DNA of 64,000 nt from Leucoraja erinacea (taxonomy: Eukaryota), in contig NC_073385.1 of the NCBI RefSeq assembly GCF_028641065.1, forward strand, positions 23,312,001-23,376,000, read 5' to 3'. The notes under the pieces are model-generated. The model was not told the DNA's origin. It did not search any database and saw only the letters and a list, made by a program, of their open reading frames with translations. The translations under genes were made by a program, and so were the position numbers. Positions 9,050-59,536 of the stretch are shown here, piece by piece; the stretch's first letter is position 1; every line of letters starts with the position of its first letter.

Positions 9050-12000
9050 CCTTGTGGCCCTTTTTGATAACCCGACCTTCAATGGCCAGCTCGTCTCAGA
9101 CAGAAAAGTAAAGCCGAACAGCAAGCGTAGCGAATGCTGATTGCCAGGTCTTCCATGGTTGTTAACTGAGGCGAGCATCTGCAGGGTGGCATCTTCTGTC
9201 GTGCGAACCACCAAAGTACCCAGATGTGAAGGATGAGTGAAATCAATTGCCATGACGTCAAATGTGTCTATTTCTGATGTGTGCTGGGCGCTCGATCTCC
9301 TGGGAGCACGGGATAAGGTGTCTGCCTGATACATGTGTTTACCCTGCTTGTAAGTGAAAGAGATATCATACTTCTGGAGCTGCAGCATAATTCTTTGCAG
9401 CCACGCTGGTGTATAGGCTTGTTTAAAATGATAACAAAAGGTTGGTGGTCAGTCTCTACGGTAACAATTTTGCCAAAAATATAATCGTTGAATTTAACAC
9501 ATGCAAAGACCATTGCCAGTAATTCCTTCTCGATCTGAGCACCTCGTCTCCGTGTCCGTCACCGTCACCGTCCTGGAGGCATAAGCAACAGGCTGCTCAT
9601 CCTGCAGACATGCTGCACCGAGGCCGTACTGGGATGCGTCACAGGTTAAAGTAACAGGTTTATTGACACCATAATAAGCCAGGGTAGGTGAGCATGACAT
9701 CTGACGTTTTAGTGTCAAACGCATGTTGCTGCTGTTTGCGCTATGCCCAGGCATTATCCTTGGGAGTAAGCTGTCACAAGGAAGCCGAGATCTCGCTGAA
9801 GTTGGGAACAAATTTTCCGAGGTAATTAACCATCCCCAGAAATTTCTGCAGGCGTGCAACATCAGTGGGTGTGGGCATTTCGATAACACCCACAGTCTTA
9901 GAAGGATCCGCCTTGAGACCATCAGCCGTGAAAATATGCCCTACGTTAACACGGAACCAACATTTTTGGAGATTCAGTTTTAAATTCACTTCCCTGGCAC
10001 GTTCAAGTACCTTCTTCAAGTTGGCATCATATTGTTCCATTTCTTTGCCACTAACAATGATATCATCCACGATGATAGCACAAGGGTATCTGTTAAACAG
10101 TTGCTCCATGGAGCGCTGAAACACCTCACTGGCTGAACGGATCCCAAACGGCATGCGCAAAAATCTGTAGCGGTCAAAACCAGTGCTGAAGGTGGTACAC
10201 ATAGATGATGCATCATCCAGGGGAATCAGCCAGAAGAAGCTCTTGGCATCTAATACAGAGAATACTTGTGGCTTACCCATGTGGGCAGCTACCTCGTCCA
10301 CGGTACGCATGGGGTGATGGGGCCTTTCGAGTGAGGTGTTCAGGTCCCTCGGATTAATACATGTACGAATCTCCTGTTTATTCTTCTTTGTAGCAGCCAC
10401 CATCGAGGACACCCAGTCTGTGGGTTCTGAAAGAGACTTGATGACTCCCAATGCCACCATCCCATCCAGTTCGGCTTTGACCCGGTCTCTCATGGCAATA
10501 GGTACATGCTGAGCAGGACGAACCACAGGACGCACCTCTGAATCTAAAGACATAGAGTAAGTTATTGGTAGCTTGCCAAGTTCTTCAATGAAAAGATCGT
10601 GGTAATCCATGAGAATACGCTGTGTAGAATCCGGAACTGGAGTTAGTTGATGCACAGCCTTGCTAAAGGTAACCAGTCACATATATTTGCAGGCATCATA
10701 GCCTAAAAGTGGAATAACATTGCGGTCAACGACATAGAATCGCACCCTGTATGGTTAATCCCCTAGGTGGCACTGCAGCTTCACAATACAGACCATATTG
10801 ATCTTGCTTCCCCCATATGCGAGAAGAGTAACATTGGTGGGTTTTAATAGCTCTGCGTTCCTCAGATGATTAAACTGTTCCCAAGACAGAACATTGCATT
10901 TCGTTCCAGTGATGATTTTCATCTCGATCACTTTATTGTTTACTGTTACGGTGACCATTGGCTCACTATTCTGCACATTTTTTGTGATAATAAAATGTAC
11001 CTGCAGAACGATTCCATCGACCTTTGGCCTCTTGTCCATGCTGCTATCAGACAAATCGACAGGGGCTCAGCCTGCAGCAAATTTATGGGCTGCTTTGTCT
11101 GCCCTCAGTTAGGTCGGGATCTGCAGCATCTCCAGAAATGTTTACGCCTCTTGCATCCATGACAAACTTGACCAAAGGCAGGGCACTTCTCTCTCTTGGC
11201 CAAGTACCCCCCACCACAGTTACATTTTTGAATAAAACAAGCTGCAGGATAATTAAGCTGTCTCTGCCTTGTTAATTCTTACCAGGGTTGACTGGGAGAT
11301 TACATGTAATTCAACGATTACATTTTTGGCAAAGCTTTTACCGAAGGGACCGACCACCAACCGGTCTCTAATAAATTCGTCTTTGAGATCACCAGATCTG
11401 CAAGTTCCTGCAGCCTTCTTTATAGCAAATGATTCAATAGTTTCACCCTCATTCTGTTATCTTGAGGAAGATTTCACATGTTCGATAAGTGGATTATCTT
11501 GAGGGTCACACAATTCTCCAAACTTTATCTTGAGACACTCCGGGTCATCTGGCGACTCAGCCGAGATGATGCACCATCGGCAGGTTGATGAGTTATTGCC
11601 TCAGTATATACAAACTGTTGTGTTCATTCGTAAGCTTCATTTCCTGCGAGGAGAAGGAGCATGCTTGCACGGAACATTGCCGGCTTGTCATAGTTGCAGC
11701 AATGAACAAATCATACTGTTGCTAAAAAGTACGTCACCGTTGTCCGATTCTGCTATCGAAAACTGGTGGGTCATGTTTTCTGAAAGCTTCAGCCATATTT
11801 GAGACTATGAAAAGCCTTGTAAATAACAGCGGGTCAAACCAAAATCTGACTTCTGACACCATGTGCAAAGTACTTATGATACAGAGTCATTATATATCAT
11901 AACAAGTACTTTAATTTGGATACTAACAGAAACCATCGAAATGCATACTGCAGGCTCCGAATCAAATGTTGAACTAACCTGCATGGCTGCTCGCATGCCG

Positions 12001-14626: not shown

Positions 14627-14877
14627 NNNNNNNNNNNNNNNNNNNNNNNNNNNNNNNNNNNNNNNNNNNNNNNNNNNNNNNNNNNNNNNNNNNNNNNNNN
14701 NNNNNNNNNNNNNNNNNNNNNNNNNNNNNNNNNNNNNNNNNNNNNNNNNNNNNNNNNNNNNNNNNNNNNNNNNNNNNNNNNNNNNNNNNNNNNNNNNNNN
14801 NNNNNNNNNNNNNNNNNNNNNNNNNNNNNNNNNNNNNNNNNNNNNNNNNNNNNNNNNNNNNNNNNNNNNNNNNNNNN
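14627..14877. other. Assembly gap (251 N)
   Basis: Run of N flanked by G-rich sequence. Confidence 0.99.
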
Positions 14878-14886
14878 GAGCGCGCT

Positions 14887-14917
<31 letters not shown>

Positions 14918-26019: not shown

Positions 26020-27078
26020 AAATACATCTACTGATGCTCCTGAACACGTCATCAGTGATGTAACCTGGGGTCATTGGGTGTTTCGGGTCTTTCAACATCA
26101 GACACCCTCACCCAGGCGACCCAGCCGTGGTTGATCAGACCACGACTTGTGTTCAGGTGGCATTCGCTCCTCCCCATGGACCTTCTCTCCTGATCCAGAG
26201 CCATCTTGAGGCCTTCTCCACTGCCTCTGGTGTTCTTGATGGCTCTTCTCCTCGTCATTCCATTGATGCCCAGTGCACTCAAGACTTTGTAGAGCGAATG
26301 CCCTGCAAAACCTCTGCAGCCAACCTCGATGGGCATACATCTTGCCTTCCAGCCCTGCTTACGGCAGTCTATGACCAGCTCTACGTACTTGGCTACCTTC
26401 CTCTCGTGGGCCTCCTCCCACGGTCTCTGTCAGTTCCAACAAGACAATGTTTTTGTTCGCCTGAGAGCAGGAGAATGTCTGGCCTCAGGGTGGTTGTGGC
26501 AATGTGCTGCGGGAACTTCAGCTGTTTCACCAGGTCTACAGAAAGCTGCCAGTCCTGCGCAGTCAACCAAGATTCCTGGCTGCTGTGGTTCTTGGCAGCT
26601 GCACTCCGGCCTGCACGAAGGTGATCATCTGGGTGGTGGGGCGTGCTCGTCTGCAGCTGCTGATTCCCATACTGATGGCTTCTGCAATGGGTTTAAGAAC
26701 CTGATCGTAATGCCAGGTGTACCAGCCCTGCCCAAGAGCCTTTGGGCAGCAGCTCAGGATGTGTTCCAACGTCCCCTTGCCCGAGCATTGCGGGCAATCC
26801 GGAGATTCCACTTTGCCCCAGATGAAGAGGTTCGATGGGCTGGGCAGGACATCATACACTGCCTGGACTAGGAACTTGATGCACTGTGGTTCAGCCTGCC
26901 AGAGCTCAGTCCATGTGACTTTTCTGTCCATGGCCTGCTCCCACCTTGTCCAGGCTCCCTGTTGCCTCAATCCAAACGCTCTGGTAAACCTCTCCTCCTC
27001 TACCACTGCCCTCACTTCCTACTGGACCAGCCTGCACCTCTCCTTCCCCTTGGCCTTGTCAAACTGGGGAGTTGGGAA
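26020..27078 (-). mobile_element. 3' fragment of a Hero-type (R2-group, restriction-like endonuclease) non-LTR retrotransposon
   Basis: CPQC...LEHILSCC zinc knuckle; frameshifted RPD...ELT.PWEE...KVAKY and PIEVGCRGF endonuclease motifs; 3' UTR. Confidence 0.82.
26043..26116 (-). ncRNA. Hammerhead-like RNA with permuted strand order and kink-turn (predicted)
   Basis: Core elements GUC, GAAA and CUGAUGA all present; perfect 6-bp stems I and III; imperfect stem II. Confidence 0.72.
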
Positions 27079-30335: not shown

Positions 30336-30830
30336 TTGCTACACGTGTGGGTTTAAACTAAATAGTGGGGGGGGGAGGGGTTGACAAATTGAGAGTATGA
30401 AGATGGAGTTAAAGAGGAAGTGAGTACAGGAAAAGTTACAAAAGACTCCAGAATTAATGGGAAGGAAAGTTCAAGAAGGGATAAGAGAGGAAGGCCAGGA
30501 CCAATAGTGTGAGAGAGGAGGTGAATACCGAAGATAAAGTGTTGTATATGAATGTGCGAAGTATAAGAAATAAAGTGGATGAGCTTGAGGCTCAGTTAGA
30601 AAGTGGCAAGTATGATGTTGTGGTAATTACAGAGTCATGGCTGCAAGAGGGCCAGGGTTGGGAACGGAATATTCAAGGGTATACGTCCTATCGAAAAGAC
30701 AGACAGGCAGGTGCACAGAGGGGGTGAGGTAGCTCTGTTGGTGAGGAATAAAATTCAGTCCCTTGCGAGGGGTGACATAGAATTAGGAGATCTAGAGTCA
30801 TTGAGGATAGAACTGAGAAATTGTAAGGGT

Positions 30831-30963
30831 CTTCTTTCGTGTGGCGTGCACAGCCTAAAGTTGTTGGACAACTTGTTCTATTTGATCTTCCGTTTGTGCA
30901 CGTCGAGTTAATTGCATTAGTCGAAACAGGGTGGACCACGTGAAGGTTGCAATCTTCCACCCC
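30831..30963 (-). mobile_element. 133-bp ribozyme-headed SINE-like insertion inside a CR1 LINE
   Basis: 11-bp TSD attgtaagggt (30820-30830 and 30964-30974); GAAAGAAG tail; interrupts the CR1 endonuclease frame. Confidence 0.88.
30910..30963 (-). ncRNA. Minimal HDV/CPEB3-like self-cleaving ribozyme (predicted)
   Basis: GGGGUGG-AAG-AUUGCA-ACC-UUCACGU-GGU-CCACCCU-GU-UUCGA-CUAA-UGCAAU: 7-bp P1 with G1.U wobble, 6-bp P2, 3-bp P3, 7-nt L3, J4/2 CUAA. Confidence 0.88.
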
Positions 30964-33689
30964 ATTGTAAGGGTAAAAAGACCCTTATGGAAGTTATCTA
31001 CAGGACGCTAAACAGTAGCCTGGAGATAGGGTGCAAGTTGCATCACGAGTTAAAATTAGCACGTAACAAAGGTAATGCTACGGTGGTTATGGGAGATTTC
31101 AACATGCAGGTGGACTGGGAAAATCAAGTTGGTACTGGACCCCAAGAAAGGGAGTTTGTGGAGTGCCTCTGTGATGGATTCTTACAGCAGCTTGTACTCG
31201 AGCCTACAAGGGAGAAGGCAATTCGGGATTTAGTGTTGTGCAATGAACCAGATTTGATAAGGGAACTCGAGGTAAAGGAGCCATTAGGAGGCAGTGACCA
31301 TAATATGATAAGTTTTAATCTACAATTTGAGAGGGAGAAGGGAAAATCGGAAGTGTCAGTATTACAATTGAACATAGGCGACTATGGAGCCATGAAGGAG
31401 GAGCTGGCCAAAGTTGACTGGAAAGATACCCCAGCAGGGATGACAGTGGAACAACAATGGCAGGTATTTCTGGGAATAATAAAGAAGGTGCAGGATCAGT
31501 TCATTCCAAAGAGGAAGAAAATTCCAAGGGGAGTAAGGTGCGATCGTGGCTGACAAGGGAAGTCAGGGACAGTATAAAAAGAAAAGAAAAGAAGTATAAC
31601 ATAGCAAAGATAAGCGGGAAGCCAGAGGCTTGGAGAACTTTTAAAGAGTAACAGAAGATAACTAAAAAGGCAATACAGGGAGAAAAGATGAGGTACGAAG
31701 GGAAGCTAGCCAAGAATATAAAGGAGGATAGTAAAAGCTTCTTTAGGTATGTGAAGAGGAAAACATTAGTTAAGACCAAAGTTGGACCCTTGAAGACTGA
31801 AACGGGTGAATTTATTATGGGGAACAAGGAAATGGCAGGCGAGTTGAACAGGTACTTTGGATCCGTCTTCACTAAGGAAGAGGCAAACAATATCCCTGAT
31901 GTACTAGTGGCCGGAGGATCTAGGATAACGGAGGAACTGAAGGAAATTCACAATAGGCAGGAAATAGTGTTGGCCAGACTGAGGGGACTGAAGGCTGATA
32001 AATCCCCAGGGCCTGATGGTCTGCATCCCAGGGTACTTAAGGAAGCGGCTCTAGAAATCGTTGGCACATTGGTGATAATTTTCCAATGTTCTATAGATTC
32101 AGGATTAGTTCCTGTGGATTGGAGGGTAGCTAATAATATCCCACTTTTTAAGAAATCTGCAAATTATAGATCAGTTAGCCTGACATCGGTGGTGGGGAAG
32201 ATGCTGGAATCAATTATAAAAGATGAAATAGCGGCACATTTGGATAGCAGTAACAGGATCGGTCCGAGTCAGCACGAAGGGGAAATCATGCATAACTAAT
32301 CTTCTGGAATTTTTTGAGGATGTAACTAGGAAAATGGACAAGGGAAAGCCAATGGATGTAGTGTACCTGGACTTTCAGAAAGCATTTGATAAGGTCCCAC
32401 ATAGGAGATTAGTGGGGAAAATTAGAACACACGGTATTAGGGGTAGGGTACTGACATGGATAGAAAATTGGTTGGCAGACAGGAAATAAAGAGTTGGGAT
32501 AAACTGGTCCCTTTCAGAATGGCAGGCAGTGATTAGTGGGGTACTGCAAGGCTCGGTGCTGGGACCGCAGCTATTTACAATGTACATTAATGATTTAGAT
32601 GACGGGATTAAAAGTAACATTAGCAAATTTGCAGATGGCACAAAGCTGGGTGGCAGTGTGAACTGTGAGGAGGATGCTATGAAGTCGCAGGGTGACTTGG
32701 ACAGGTTGGGTGAGTGGACAGATGCATGGCAGATGCAGTTTAATGTGGATAAATGTTATCCACTTTGGTATAAAAAACAGGAAGGCAGATTATTATCTGA
32801 ATGGTGTCAAGTTGGGAAAAGAGGAAGTACAACGAGATACTGGGGGTCCTTGTTCATCAGTCACTGAAAGTAAGCATGCAGGTACAGCAGGCAGTGAAGA
32901 AAGCAAATGGCCTGCTGGCCTTCATAACAAGAGAAGTTGTGTTTAGGAGCAAAGAGGTCCTTCTGCAGTTGTACAGGGCCCTGTATTTGAGGAAGGACAT
33001 TCTTACTATTGAGGGAGTGCAGTGTAGGTTCACAAGGTTAATTCCTGGTGAGACTGTCATATGCTGAAAGAATGGAGCGGCTGGGCGTGTATACTCTGGA
33101 ATTTAGAAGGATGAGAGGCAATCATATTGAAACATATAAGATTATTAAGGGTTTGGACACGCTAGAGGCAGGAAACATGTCCCCGATGTTGTGGCAGTCC
33201 AGAACCAGACACCACAATTTATGAATAAGGGGTAAGCCATTTAGAACGGTGATGAGGAAAAACTTTTTCACACAAAGGGTTGTGAATCTGTGGAATTCTC
33301 TGCCTCAGAAGGCAGTGGAAGCCGATTCTCTGGATTCTTTCAAGAGACAGTTAGATAGAGCTCTTAAAGATCGCGGAGTCAGGGGATATGGCGAGATGGC
33401 AGGAACGGGGTACTGATTGTGGATGATCAGCCATAGCCTCGAAGGGCCGAATGGCCTACCCCTGCACCTATTTTCTTTTGTTAATAAGCTTCTGTAAAAT
33501 TGCAGGGTACAGGGAGTCAATGAGAAAATATAGAACTAATGTGAATGGGTGATCAGTGGTCGGCATGGACATGGTAGGCTGAAGGACTGTTTCCACCTCA
33601 AGGCCTGTTTCCATGCTGCATTTCTAAAATGAACTAAACTAAACTAATCTAACCTGTGATCCCTCAATCAATTATCTAAATCTATGCCT

Positions 33690-40779: not shown

Positions 40780-41188
40780 AGATTCAGATTCAATTTTAAT
40801 TGTCATTGTCAGTGTACAGTACAGAGACAACGAAATGCATTTAGCATCTCCCTTGAAGAGCGACATAGCAAACGATTTGAATAAAAAAAAAATAATAATA
40901 AGTGTCGGGGGGGGGGGGGGGGGGGGGGGGGGGGGATTAGCAGTCACCGAGGGTACGTTGTTTAGTAGAGTGACAGCGGCCGGAAAGAAGCTGTTCCTCG
41001 ACCTGCTGGTTCGGCAACGGAGAGACCTGTAGCGCCTCCCGGATGGTAGGAGGGTAAACAGTCCATGGTTGGGGTGAGAGCAGTCCTTGGCGATGCTGAG
41101 CGCCCTCCGCAGACAGCGCTTGCTTTGGACAGACTCAATGGAGGGGAGCGTGGAACCGGTGATGCGTTGGGCAATTTTCACCACCCTC
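40780..41188 (-). mobile_element. Rex/Babar LINE 3' fragment nested in Gypsy
   Basis: HPNHGLFTLLPSGRRYRSLRCRTSRSRNSFFP; gattca tail. Confidence 0.85.
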
Positions 41189-57946: not shown

Positions 57947-59469
57947 CTAGACCAAGTGCAGACCCGTTGGGTCTGTTTCCCCAATGGCGTTTGCGGGGGG
58001 GGGGGGGGGGGGAAGAAGAGGGGGGGAGGAGGAGGAAATGGGACAGATTTGGGAGGGAAAGGAGAGTGGGGTAGGGGGTGAGAGAGGAGGATGGGGAGAG
58101 AGATGTGGGGGAGGGGGGGGATGGGGAGGTAGGGGAGGAGGGAGGGAGGGGGAGAGGGGTGGGGGGAGAGAGGGGAAAGAGTGGGGAGGGAGAGTGGAGG
58201 GGGAAGGGGAGAGGTGGAAGAGTGGGGAGGGAGGAGGAGAGGGGTAGGGGGAGTGATGGAAGAGGGACAGAGGGGTAGGAGGAAGGGGTAGGTGGAGAGA
58301 GGGAAGGGGGTGGCGTAGAGAGGGAAGGAGGGTGGGGGAGAGAGGGATGGGTGGGAGAGGGAGAGGGGTGAGGAGAGGGAAACATAGAACCATAGAAATT
58401 AAGTGCAGGAGTAGGCCATTCGGCCCTTCGAGCCTGCACCACCATTCAATATGATCGTGGCTGATCATCCAACTCAGTATTCTGTACCTGCCTTCTCTCC
58501 ATACACCCTGATCCCTTTAGCCACAAGGGCCACATCTAACTCCTTCTTAAATATAGCCAATGAACTGGCCTCAACTACCTTCTGTGGCAGAAAATTCCAC
58601 GTTTCTATAAGAACCGCCCTCAATCTTCTAAATTCTAGCGTTTACAAGCCGAGTCTACCCAGTCTTTCTTCATATGAAAGTCCTGACATCTCAGGAATCA
58701 ATCTGGTGAACCTTCTCTGTACTCCCCCTATGGAAAGAATGTCTTTGAGCATTGGGCATTGTGACATAACACAATGGAACGTTCATCAGGGGCTGGGGCT
58801 GTGGCTGCTTCTATGGGTGAGAAGGGGGTAAGATCCTCCCTCAATCTTCTAAAATCTAGCGAGTACAAGCCGAGTCTATCCAGTCTTTCTTCATATGAAA
58901 GTCCTGACATCCCAGGAATCAGTCTGGTGAACCTTCTCTGTACTCCCTCTATGGCAACAATGTCTTTGAGCATTGGGCATTGTGACATCACATGATGGAA
59001 CGTTCACCAGTGGCTGGGGCTCCTGCAAAGGCATATGTAAATGAATCCATTCCGATTGGACATATGTGAACATTGGGCATTGTGACATCACACGATGGAA
59101 CGTTCACTGGGGGCTGGGGCTGGTTGCTATGGGTGAGAAGCCAGTTCATTTTTGAAATATTGAGGGGGAGGGGGTGAAGGATTTGATTAAAAACGTGTAC
59201 TTAAACACGACGAAATGTAATGAGGAGCTGATACTTAGAAAGAAAAGTTAAATCTCTACCGAAATGGAAAAGATGTCGGCGATTCTGCGTCTGGTTTCGG
59301 AGTTGCAGGGAATCAAAGGAAGAAAGGCGGCTGGCAGCCGTCCATGTAAATTGATCCATTCCGATTGGACATCTGCGAGTATTGGGCATTGTGACATCAC
59401 ACGATGGAACGAATCAAAAGGCAGAAAGGCAGCCGGACGGCAGGCGGCAGGCACACAGTTTTAACATAT

Positions 59470-59535
<66 letters not shown>
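57947..59535 (-). mobile_element. Non-autonomous Helitron (1589 bp) carrying CR1 fragments
   Basis: On minus: A|TC start; cagaccc-aac-gggtctg hairpin then CTAG|T end; no TSD; host CR1 rejoins across the site. Confidence 0.85.
59470..59535. repeat. (GATA)n microsatellite at the Helitron 5' end
   Basis: About 16 perfect units. Confidence 0.97.

Positions 59536-59536
<1 letters not shown>

Follow-up and report, generated by a model that had tools for sequence, protein, structure and literature searches.

[quoted passage not shown] We analyzed a stretch of 64,000 nucleotides (NC_073385.1, positions 23,312,001 to 23,376,000 of assembly GCF_028641065.1), here called the window, and all coordinates below refer to it. 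A preliminary description, made from the sequence alone, had reported a 133-bp SINE with a complete minimal HDV/CPEB3-type ribozyme at its head. We found that every sequence feature in that description is present at 30831-30963 on the minus strand, and the observation is confirmed.

The insertion is flanked by an exact 11-bp target-site duplication (TSD), ATTGTAAGGGT on the plus strand. One copy is at 30964-30974, next to the 5' end of the element, and the other is at 30820-30830, next to its 3' tail. The element lies antisense within an ORF for an APE-type LINE endonuclease (30630-31553, plus strand). The sequences flanking the insertion translate without stop codons, as ...ELRNCKG on one side and KKTLMEVIYR... 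on the other, and the ORF matches Pfam PF14529 (E = 1.6e-07). The closest proteins come from rays and a skate.

The first 54 nt of the element (30910-30963, minus strand) fit an HDV-like nested double pseudoknot that lacks P4, with the predicted cleavage site between 30964 and 30963. We number the RNA from the 5' end of the element, such that position p is 30964 minus the window coordinate. P1 is formed by GGGGUGG (1-7; 30963-30957) and CCACCCU (30-36; 30934-30928), and G1 is paired with U36 in the G.U wobble that closes P1 in HDV-like ribozymes. J1/2 is AAG (8-10). P2 is formed by AUUGCA (11-16; 30948-30953) and UGCAAU (48-53; 30911-30916), and G10 (30954) can add a seventh pair with position 54. 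P3 is formed by ACC (17-19) and GGU (27-29), and encloses L3, UUCACGU (20-26; 30938-30944), within 30935-30947. P1 is followed by GU (37-38), which makes the 3' strand of P1.1 with G37 paired to C22 and U38 opposite U21, and then by the linker UUCGA (39-43) in place of P4 (GU and linker together, 30921-30927). J4/2 is CUAA (44-47; 30917-30920), with the presumptive catalytic cytosine, C44, at 30920, at the first position of J4/2 as expected (bioRxiv 10.1101/2023.06.13.544163). There is no mispair in any of the helices.

We tested whether this pattern could be found by chance. The bare topology was uninformative: there were 49 hits in the window and 51 +/- 8 in 40 shuffled sequences. In contrast, with constraints on L3, the G of P1.1, and J4/2, there was a single hit in the window, the site described here, and none in 40 shuffles. 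A relaxed version of this descriptor also had only this hit in the window and detected no second ribozyme, compared to 494 hits in 2341 shuffles. That is, 0.21 hits are expected per window, or approximately 1.7e-6 per position and strand. The weight therefore comes from G1 being the first base of an insert delimited by a TSD. These descriptors were written after the candidate had been seen, and partly from a general consensus, and are not fully independent.

A search with the 4227 families of Rfam, using 81 nt, gave one hit, RF02682, the HDV ribozyme of Faecalibacterium prausnitzii. Model positions 1-74, from the first position to the last, aligned with 30963-30910 (18.8 bits, E = 0.065). This score is well below the gathering score of 44, and the missing P4 lowers it: the model has 20 nt where this element has 5. 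The two share P3 (ACC/GGU), most of L3 (CUNNACGU), and J4/2 (CUAA). RF02682 is a bacterial ribozyme found upstream of glmM (PMC6765202). There were no hits at the gathering threshold in the entire window, and the Rfam CPEB3 (RF00622) and HDV models gave no hit at E values up to 10. Predicted minimum free energy (MFE) folds retained P1 and P3, but the nested-fold energies were no better than those of shuffled sequences (z = -0.38 and -0.50). This is expected for a pseudoknot but gives no support.

Downstream of the head, the middle of the element (positions 55-82; 30882-30909) is variable. It is followed by a predicted hairpin, AAGUUGU-CCA-ACAACUU (positions 90-106; 30858-30874), that is based only on the MFE fold (z-score -0.5, not significant), and the element ends in the tail CGAAAGAAG (30831-30839), a short form of a (GAA)n tail. 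The 44-codon open frame of the element matched no predicted protein, and an exact 24-mer from the head was absent from the metagenome, genome, and viral contig collections searched.

The element belongs to an abundant family. We compared the window to public contigs carrying two organism labels, in four sets (X1, X6, X15, and X17, with 14169, 17974, 1202, and 140 contigs, respectively). X1, X6, and X15 each had one contig from a LINE copy that lacks the insert. These contigs join 30819 to 30964 and skip exactly 144 bp (30820-30963), with 11 letters fitting both sides. The best-supported break points into unrelated, AT-rich sequence (agreement 0.34-0.40) were at G1 or within two bases of it: at 30963 (139, 199, and 25 contigs in X1, X6, and X15), at 30964 (149, 223, 28, and 7 contigs in X1, X6, X15, and X17), and at 30965 (82 contigs in X6). 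At the other end, 472, 580, 89, and 15 contigs (X1, X6, X15, and X17) departed at 30830, continued as ...TTCTTCT on the plus strand, and then diverged (agreement 0.4). In the middle, 129, 104, and 17 contigs (X1, X6, and X15) departed at 30889 with a shared variant sequence, indicating subfamilies that differ here, including by a short deletion. Depth of coverage also suggested that the head and tail are more common than the middle and the LINE flanks, but contig depth cannot rank parts of an element and we rely on the counts at break points. X15 and X17 are only guessed to be RNA (X15 is probably DNA) and all four sets are assembled contigs, in which no RNA 5' ends were seen; we draw no inference about expression.

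Variation in the pooled contigs is compatible with the predicted fold. Of the ten variant sites listed inside the element, six are at positions 58-74, one (30865, position 99) is in the loop of the predicted 3' hairpin, and three are in the head. Position 32 (30932) is A in this copy and G in 58-88% of pooled depth, and both can pair with U5. Position 54 is U here and C in about 99% of pooled depth (30910 A>G), giving G10.U54 in this copy and G10-C54 in the family. Position 45 (30919) is U here and G in 7-36% of pooled depth, changing J4/2 from CUAA to CGAA. No variant of 5% or more was listed at the presumptive catalytic C (30920). These are pooled values rather than alignments of individual copies, and cover only part of the variant sites and of the places where contigs depart, so disruptive variants and truncated copies may exist. 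No double-sided compensatory change was seen, the two variants at paired sites are single transitions, and A32 could be CpG decay of G32.

The preliminary description inferred a promoter-less SINE that frees its 5' end from host read-through transcripts by self-cleavage and recruits a partner LINE through a GAA-type tail. We found this interpretation to be partly supported. The family, its sharp 5' boundary at G1, and its (GAA)n tail are supported, and the head has every sequence and pairing feature of a minimal HDV/CPEB3-type ribozyme. The term SINE is loose. The element is short, high-copy (thousands of contigs in each of two DNA sets), flanked by a TSD, and has a LINE-type tail. However, SINEs in the strict sense have a head derived from tRNA, 7SL, 5S, or snRNA with an internal Pol III promoter (PMC4494074; PMC5786205). 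We found no tRNA in 30600-31200 using ARAGORN, which ruled out a tRNA-derived head, and no small-RNA family in Rfam. With no Pol III-type head, no ORF function, a conserved head and tail around a variable middle, and a common 5' end, the element fits what Kojima calls a bipartite non-autonomous LINE, or a SIDE (PMC5786205; PMC3414825). The two ends of such an element are those of an autonomous LINE of the same genome. We found no partner LINE in the window, which contains an RT ORF at 9774-10655: there was no similarity to the 3' part of the element and no (GAA)n or (TTC)n array. A blastn search (word size 7) found no second copy in the window, only chance matches of 11-16 nt.

Based on these results, we think it likely that this is one copy of an abundant, SINE-sized, non-autonomous non-LTR retroposon of a ray (batoid) genome, with a predicted 54-nt ribozyme without P4 at its 5' end and a predicted hairpin region and (GAA)n tail at its 3' end. 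In this view, copies have no promoter of their own and are transcribed as part of longer host or neighboring transcripts. The head would fold and cleave immediately 5' of G1, with C44 as general acid, freeing an RNA that begins with G1 and has a compact 5' structure. A LINE reverse transcriptase supplied in trans would recognize the 3' region and tail and copy the RNA to its very 5' end by target-primed reverse transcription, giving full-length insertions with TSDs. The analysis itself establishes the fold at the level of sequence, the TSD, the empty site, the family, the boundary at G1, and the tail, whereas catalysis, read-through transcription, and the identity and mode of action of the partner LINE are inferred. 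HDV-like ribozymes without P4 are active in vitro (bioRxiv 10.1101/2023.06.13.544163), and about 50 nt suffice for the catalytic fold (PMC4870747).

It is possible, although unlikely, that the fold is real and conserved but selected for something other than self-cleavage, such as binding the LINE protein, protecting the 5' end as a cap-like structure, or signaling the completion of reverse transcription or second-strand synthesis, and that cleavage is weak or absent because P4 is missing. In R2, the ribozyme region also binds R2 protein and the fold is said to protect the 5' end (PMC6765202; PMC13708176), and nothing in our analyses shows catalysis. However, G1 as the exact 5' end of hundreds of copies is what cleavage predicts, the catalytic C and the G1.U wobble are present, P4-less relatives cleave in vitro, and other roles do not exclude cleavage. 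Still less likely is a chance resemblance, in which the sharp 5' end reflects a transcription start, from an unrecognized internal promoter or the 5' end of a parental LINE transcript, and the HDV-like pattern has no function. The bare topology is at chance level, the relaxed descriptor has 0.21 chance hits per window, the Rfam score is below threshold, and UUCGA at positions 39-43 resembles the core of a Pol III B box. In contrast, the probability of a hit at the exact first base is about 1.7e-6, there are no mispairs, L3, P1.1, and J4/2 are like those of CPEB3, the only Rfam hit is to an HDV model aligned end to end, the listed head variants are structure-neutral, and there is no tRNA-like head and no A-box match by eye.

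It is about as likely as not that the family works as proposed but that this copy is an inert relic, antisense in a dead LINE and not transcribed or not cleaved at this locus. It differs from the pooled majority at 30865, 30910, and 30932 at least, and the insertion disrupts the LINE ORF. However, all pairs of the head are intact, U5-A32 is even stronger than the majority U5.G32, and the TSD is still perfect (11 of 11). This possibility concerns the copy and does not compete with the explanation for the family.

The same architecture is established for two groups of non-autonomous elements. R2 SIDEs (Short Internally Deleted Elements) of Drosophila consist of a 5' HDV-like ribozyme that sets the 5' end by self-cleavage of a co-transcript and a 3' end recognized by the LINE protein, and they propagate by target-primed reverse transcription (PMC3414825). 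They are site-specific in 28S rDNA, rare, and carry a large ribozyme, whereas the element described here is dispersed, very abundant, has an 11-bp TSD, and has a predicted ribozyme of only 54 nt without P4. [quoted passage not shown] Those elements are in protists and Pr77 is also an internal promoter; here the host is a vertebrate, the predicted ribozyme is shorter, and no promoter role is known.

The predicted head also resembles ribozymes outside of such elements. Minimal HDV-like ribozymes (drz-Mtgn, theta ribozymes) are double pseudoknots of about 50 nt without the P4 domain and with the catalytic C first in J4/2 (bioRxiv 10.1101/2023.06.13.544163), and the head fits this definition. They come from metagenomes and gut phages, often beside tRNA genes; the predicted ribozyme here is at the 5' end of a vertebrate retroposon. 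The preliminary description proposed that the mammalian CPEB3 ribozyme has the same L3. This is borne out for the named positions U20, C22, A23, and G25 (PMC4836649), but L3 positions 21, 24, and 26 were not covered by this comparison. P1.1 (one G-C plus one U-U) and a 4-nt J4/2 that begins with the catalytic C also agree, the minor CGAA form of the family matches C57 G58 of CPEB3, and P1 is 7 bp and starts with G1. In contrast, CPEB3 has a P4 helix and is a conserved single-copy element in a CPEB3 intron, whereas here P4 is replaced by 5 nt, P1 and P2 have other sequences, and the element is a retroposon inside a LINE ORF.

Ribozyme-headed non-autonomous retroelements are known from Drosophila rDNA and trypanosomatids. 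What would be new is a vertebrate family of this kind, its high abundance, and a head that is a "minimal" HDV-like ribozyme without P4, a form that the theta-ribozyme preprint found only in gut-phage genomes and whose origin it left open. We found no description of such a family in cartilaginous fish in the literature that we searched, in agreement with the preliminary description. A more speculative and improbable reading, although not excluded, is that the CPEB3-type catalytic core (L3 UUCACGU, a G-C/U-U P1.1, and J4/2 CGAA or CUAA) is an old retrotransposon module of vertebrates, carried in cartilaginous fish by a LINE lineage related to Vingi and its sister clade Ingi and by mini-derivatives of that lineage. 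The "mammal-only" CPEB3 ribozyme would then be a domesticated copy of such a head, and this 133-nt element would be the smallest natural template that a vertebrate LINE mobilizes in trans, with a 54-nt self-processing head and about 45 nt of 3' signal.

If active, the family would provide a natural minimal design, a 54-nt head, a short 3' signal, and a (GAA)n tail, and a way to study how LINE machinery accepts uncapped, 5'-OH RNA templates. It would also allow a test of a retrotransposon origin for the CPEB3 ribozyme. If a Vingi-like partner were confirmed, Vingi would be added to the LINE clades with 5' ribozymes, among which it was not listed as of 2018 (PMC5786205). Vingi 5' and 3' UTR modules are in use as donor-RNA ends in gene-insertion platforms (PMC13708176), so a natural minimal template is of practical interest. 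For the host, an active family would mean thousands of potential self-cleaving sites in introns and UTRs, and would offer a look at how these affect host transcripts.

We found that the region from 30963 to 30831 on the minus strand is a 133-nt segment flanked by an exact 11-bp direct repeat. The repeat is ATTGTAAGGGT on the + strand and is located at 30820-30830 and 30964-30974. The sequences on either side of the segment translate without stops, in one frame, as a single APE-type endonuclease domain of a LINE on the + strand (...GGEVALLVRNK...ELRNCKG, then KKTLMEVIYR...VVMGDFNMQVDW...). The downstream ORF matches Pfam PF14529 (E 1.6e-07). The segment is therefore a true insertion into an older LINE, antisense to it, and it splits the LINE endonuclease ORF (30630-31553, + strand). 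The closest proteins to this piece of the LINE are annotated in Hypanus sabinus (80% identity), Hemitrygon akajei, and Leucoraja erinacea. The genome is thus that of a ray or a close relative, and the reference to cartilaginous fish in the preliminary description is reasonable. These are listed as uncharacterized proteins, which suggests that LINE fragments have been annotated as genes in ray and skate assemblies. In addition, a 213-aa partial hypothetical protein from an assembly of Aeromonas cavernicola is 74% identical to this endonuclease, probably because of fish DNA contaminating a bacterial assembly.

The head of the insertion fits the predicted HDV-like fold, and each structural element listed in the preliminary description is present in the sequence. 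P1 is formed by GGGGUGG (RNA positions 1-7) and CCACCCU (30-36), with a G1.U36 wobble. J1/2 is AAG. P2 is formed by AUUGCA (11-16) and UGCAAU (48-53), and G10 can add a seventh P2 pair with position 54. P3 is formed by ACC and GGU, and L3 is UUCACGU (20-26). The GU at positions 37-38 can form P1.1 with C22 and U21. A five-base linker, UUCGA, is found where P4 would be, and J4/2 is CUAA, with the presumptive catalytic C at 30920. None of the pairs is a mispair. In the nested minimum free energy (MFE) fold, the linker UUCGA (30921-30925, minus strand) can pair with UCGA at positions 58-61 (30903-30906), and this could be a competing fold. However, the other subfamily (see below) has CCGG at that place, so this pairing is not conserved.

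We tested whether the fold is more than a chance resemblance. The bare topology is not: there were 49 hits in the window compared to 51 +/- 8 in 40 shuffled sequences. In contrast, when constraints were placed on L3, the G after P1, and J4/2, this site was the only hit on either strand, and there were 0 hits in 40 shuffles. A relaxed form that allowed one P1 mispair and a P4 of up to 120 nt again found only this site, compared to 494 hits in 2341 shuffles. That is, 0.21 hits are expected per window, or about 1.7e-6 per position and strand. The significance therefore rests on G1 being the very first base of an insert delimited by a target-site duplication (TSD). We note that these descriptors were written after the candidate had been seen, and partly from the general consensus rather than from the published descriptors (PMC4870747), and so are not fully independent.

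A search of Rfam provided a test that does not depend on our descriptors. Among 4227 families, searched with 601 nt and with 81 nt, the only ribozyme hit was RF02682, the HDV ribozyme of F. prausnitzii. The sole other hit, found with the 601 nt, was a lncRNA model in the flank at E 7.5. RF02682 aligns from model position 1 at 30963 to position 74 at 30910. P3, most of L3, and J4/2 are identical, and a 20-nt P4 region is replaced by 5 nt. The score was 18.8 bits (E 0.48 with 601 nt and 0.065 with 81 nt), well below the gathering score of 44. The CPEB3 and HDV models did not appear at E up to 10, and there was no hit at gathering thresholds anywhere in the window, including at 26043-26116, where a hammerhead-like motif in a Hero retrotransposon 3' UTR had been placed. 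Nested MFE folds retained P1 and P3 but were no better than those of shuffled sequences, a result that says little for a pseudoknot.

We found that the insertion belongs to a family whose copies end at G1. The window itself contains one copy. A search of sequencing runs found 20 entries from 11 studies under seven organism codes, all kept as contigs. We compared contigs from four of these runs to 30700-31100 at 80% likeness: X1 and X17, from one organism (organism A), and X6 and X15, from another (organism C). There were 14169 contigs from X1, 17974 from X6, 1202 from X15, and 140 from X17. X15 is probably DNA and X17 is only guessed to be RNA, and contigs cannot show the starts of molecules, so we draw nothing on expression from these runs.

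The best-supported places at which contigs left the reference for unrelated sequence were at the two ends of the element. At 30963 there were 139, 199, and 25 contigs in X1, X6, and X15, respectively (not listed in X17), followed by AT-rich sequence with an agreement of 0.35-0.40. At 30964 there were 149, 223, 28, and 7 contigs in X1, X6, X15, and X17, also followed by AT-rich sequence (agreement 0.34-0.46). At 30965 there were 82 contigs, listed in X6 only, again followed by AT-rich sequence (agreement 0.37). The spread of one or two bases on the 5' side is what chance matches to A and T in AT-rich flanks would give. At 30830 there were 472, 580, 89, and 15 contigs in X1, X6, X15, and X17. 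These continued as ...TTCTTCT on the + strand, that is, as (GAA)n on the strand of the element, and then diverged (agreement 0.40-0.43). An internal break at 30889 (129, 104, and 17 contigs in X1, X6, and X15) carried a shared alternative sequence, indicating a subfamily with a shorter middle. In addition, contigs of other copies of the LINE joined 30819 to 30964, skipping 144 bp with 11 letters fitting both sides (one contig each in X1, X6, and X15). This is the empty site. These are only the best-supported places, so truncated copies and rarer variants surely exist.

Ten of the best-supported variant sites, all of at least 5%, are inside the element, and three of these are in the 54-nt head. 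Position 32 is A in this copy and G in 58-88% of the pooled depth, and both pair with U5. Position 54 is U in this copy and C in about 99%, and both pair with G10. Position 45 is U in this copy and G in 7-36%, changing J4/2 from CUAA to CGAA. None of these variants is at the presumptive catalytic C. Six of the variant sites are in the middle, at positions 58-74, and one (position 99) is in the loop of the predicted 3' hairpin. These results fit a conserved head and tail with a free middle, although the data are pooled and limited to the best-supported variants. There was no double-sided compensatory change among these variants, and A32 may simply be CpG decay. The head of this copy is intact. 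The element is also open in frame 1 for all 44 codons (30832-30963, minus strand), but no protein in a collection of 5.8 billion clusters shares words with it, so this open frame is probably due to chance.

Other features of the window were found in the course of this work. A 293-aa ORF at 9774-10655 on the minus strand has a reverse transcriptase domain (PF00078, E 6.8e-19) and is another LINE or retroelement fragment. A run of 251 N (14627-14877) is followed within 10 bases by a run of 30 G (14887-14916), and a second run of 29 G is at 40907-40935. A long G/A-rich tract of low complexity (58000-58400) lies next to a 221-bp unit repeated 1.9 times at 91% identity (58608-59021), and (GATA)17 is at 59470-59536.

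The predicted head resembles several ribozymes that have been described. HDV-like ribozymes need about 50 nt and few fixed bases (PMC4870747). Minimal forms lack P4 and cleave in vitro. They were first found in metagenomic samples, and the searches in the same preprint detected them only in gut-phage genomes (bioRxiv 10.1101/2023.06.13.544163). The CPEB3 ribozyme is described as having U20, C22, A23, and G25, a U20.G25 wobble, a P1.1 of one G-C plus one U-U, and a 4-nt J4/2 with C57 G58 (PMC4836649). The element has the same letters at the same numbers, and the minor form of J4/2 in its family is CGAA. The preliminary description had claimed that the mammalian CPEB3 ribozyme has the same L3 sequence, and our comparison supports this for the four L3 positions named in that work.

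Non-autonomous elements headed by ribozymes are established, including the R2 SIDEs (PMC3414825) and NARTc and other derivatives of L1Tc/ingi (PMC3383444; PMC4035085). Kojima lists RTE, Ingi, Vingi, and R2 as makers of bipartite non-autonomous LINEs, but Vingi is not among the clades that he lists with 5' ribozymes (PMC5786205). In the literature we searched, which did not extend to Repbase, we found no paper on HDV-like ribozymes in sharks, rays, or chimaeras, or in Vingi, although it is possible that the family has already been catalogued.

Our results confirm the observation of a TSD-flanked insertion that begins at G1 of an HDV-like pattern. The interpretation offered with it, a promoter-less SINE that frees its own 5' end from read-through transcripts and uses a GAA-type tail to recruit a partner LINE, is supported in part. 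The element is not a SINE in the strict sense because it has no Pol III head, and it is not a member of the Rfam CPEB3 family because there is no hit to the model and no P4. By its sequence, it would instead work like an HDV-like ribozyme of the minimal type. The fold at the level of sequence, the insertion and its empty site, the family, the boundary at G1, and the (GAA)n tail come directly from our analyses, whereas self-cleavage, transcription by read-through, and the use of a partner LINE are inferred. Based on these results, the reading that we consider likely is that this is a SIDE-like, non-autonomous non-LTR retroposon headed by a predicted ribozyme. In this view, the minimal HDV-like head most likely sets the 5' end of the element by self-cleavage of read-through transcripts, and the 3' region and (GAA)n tail would be used by a LINE in trans.
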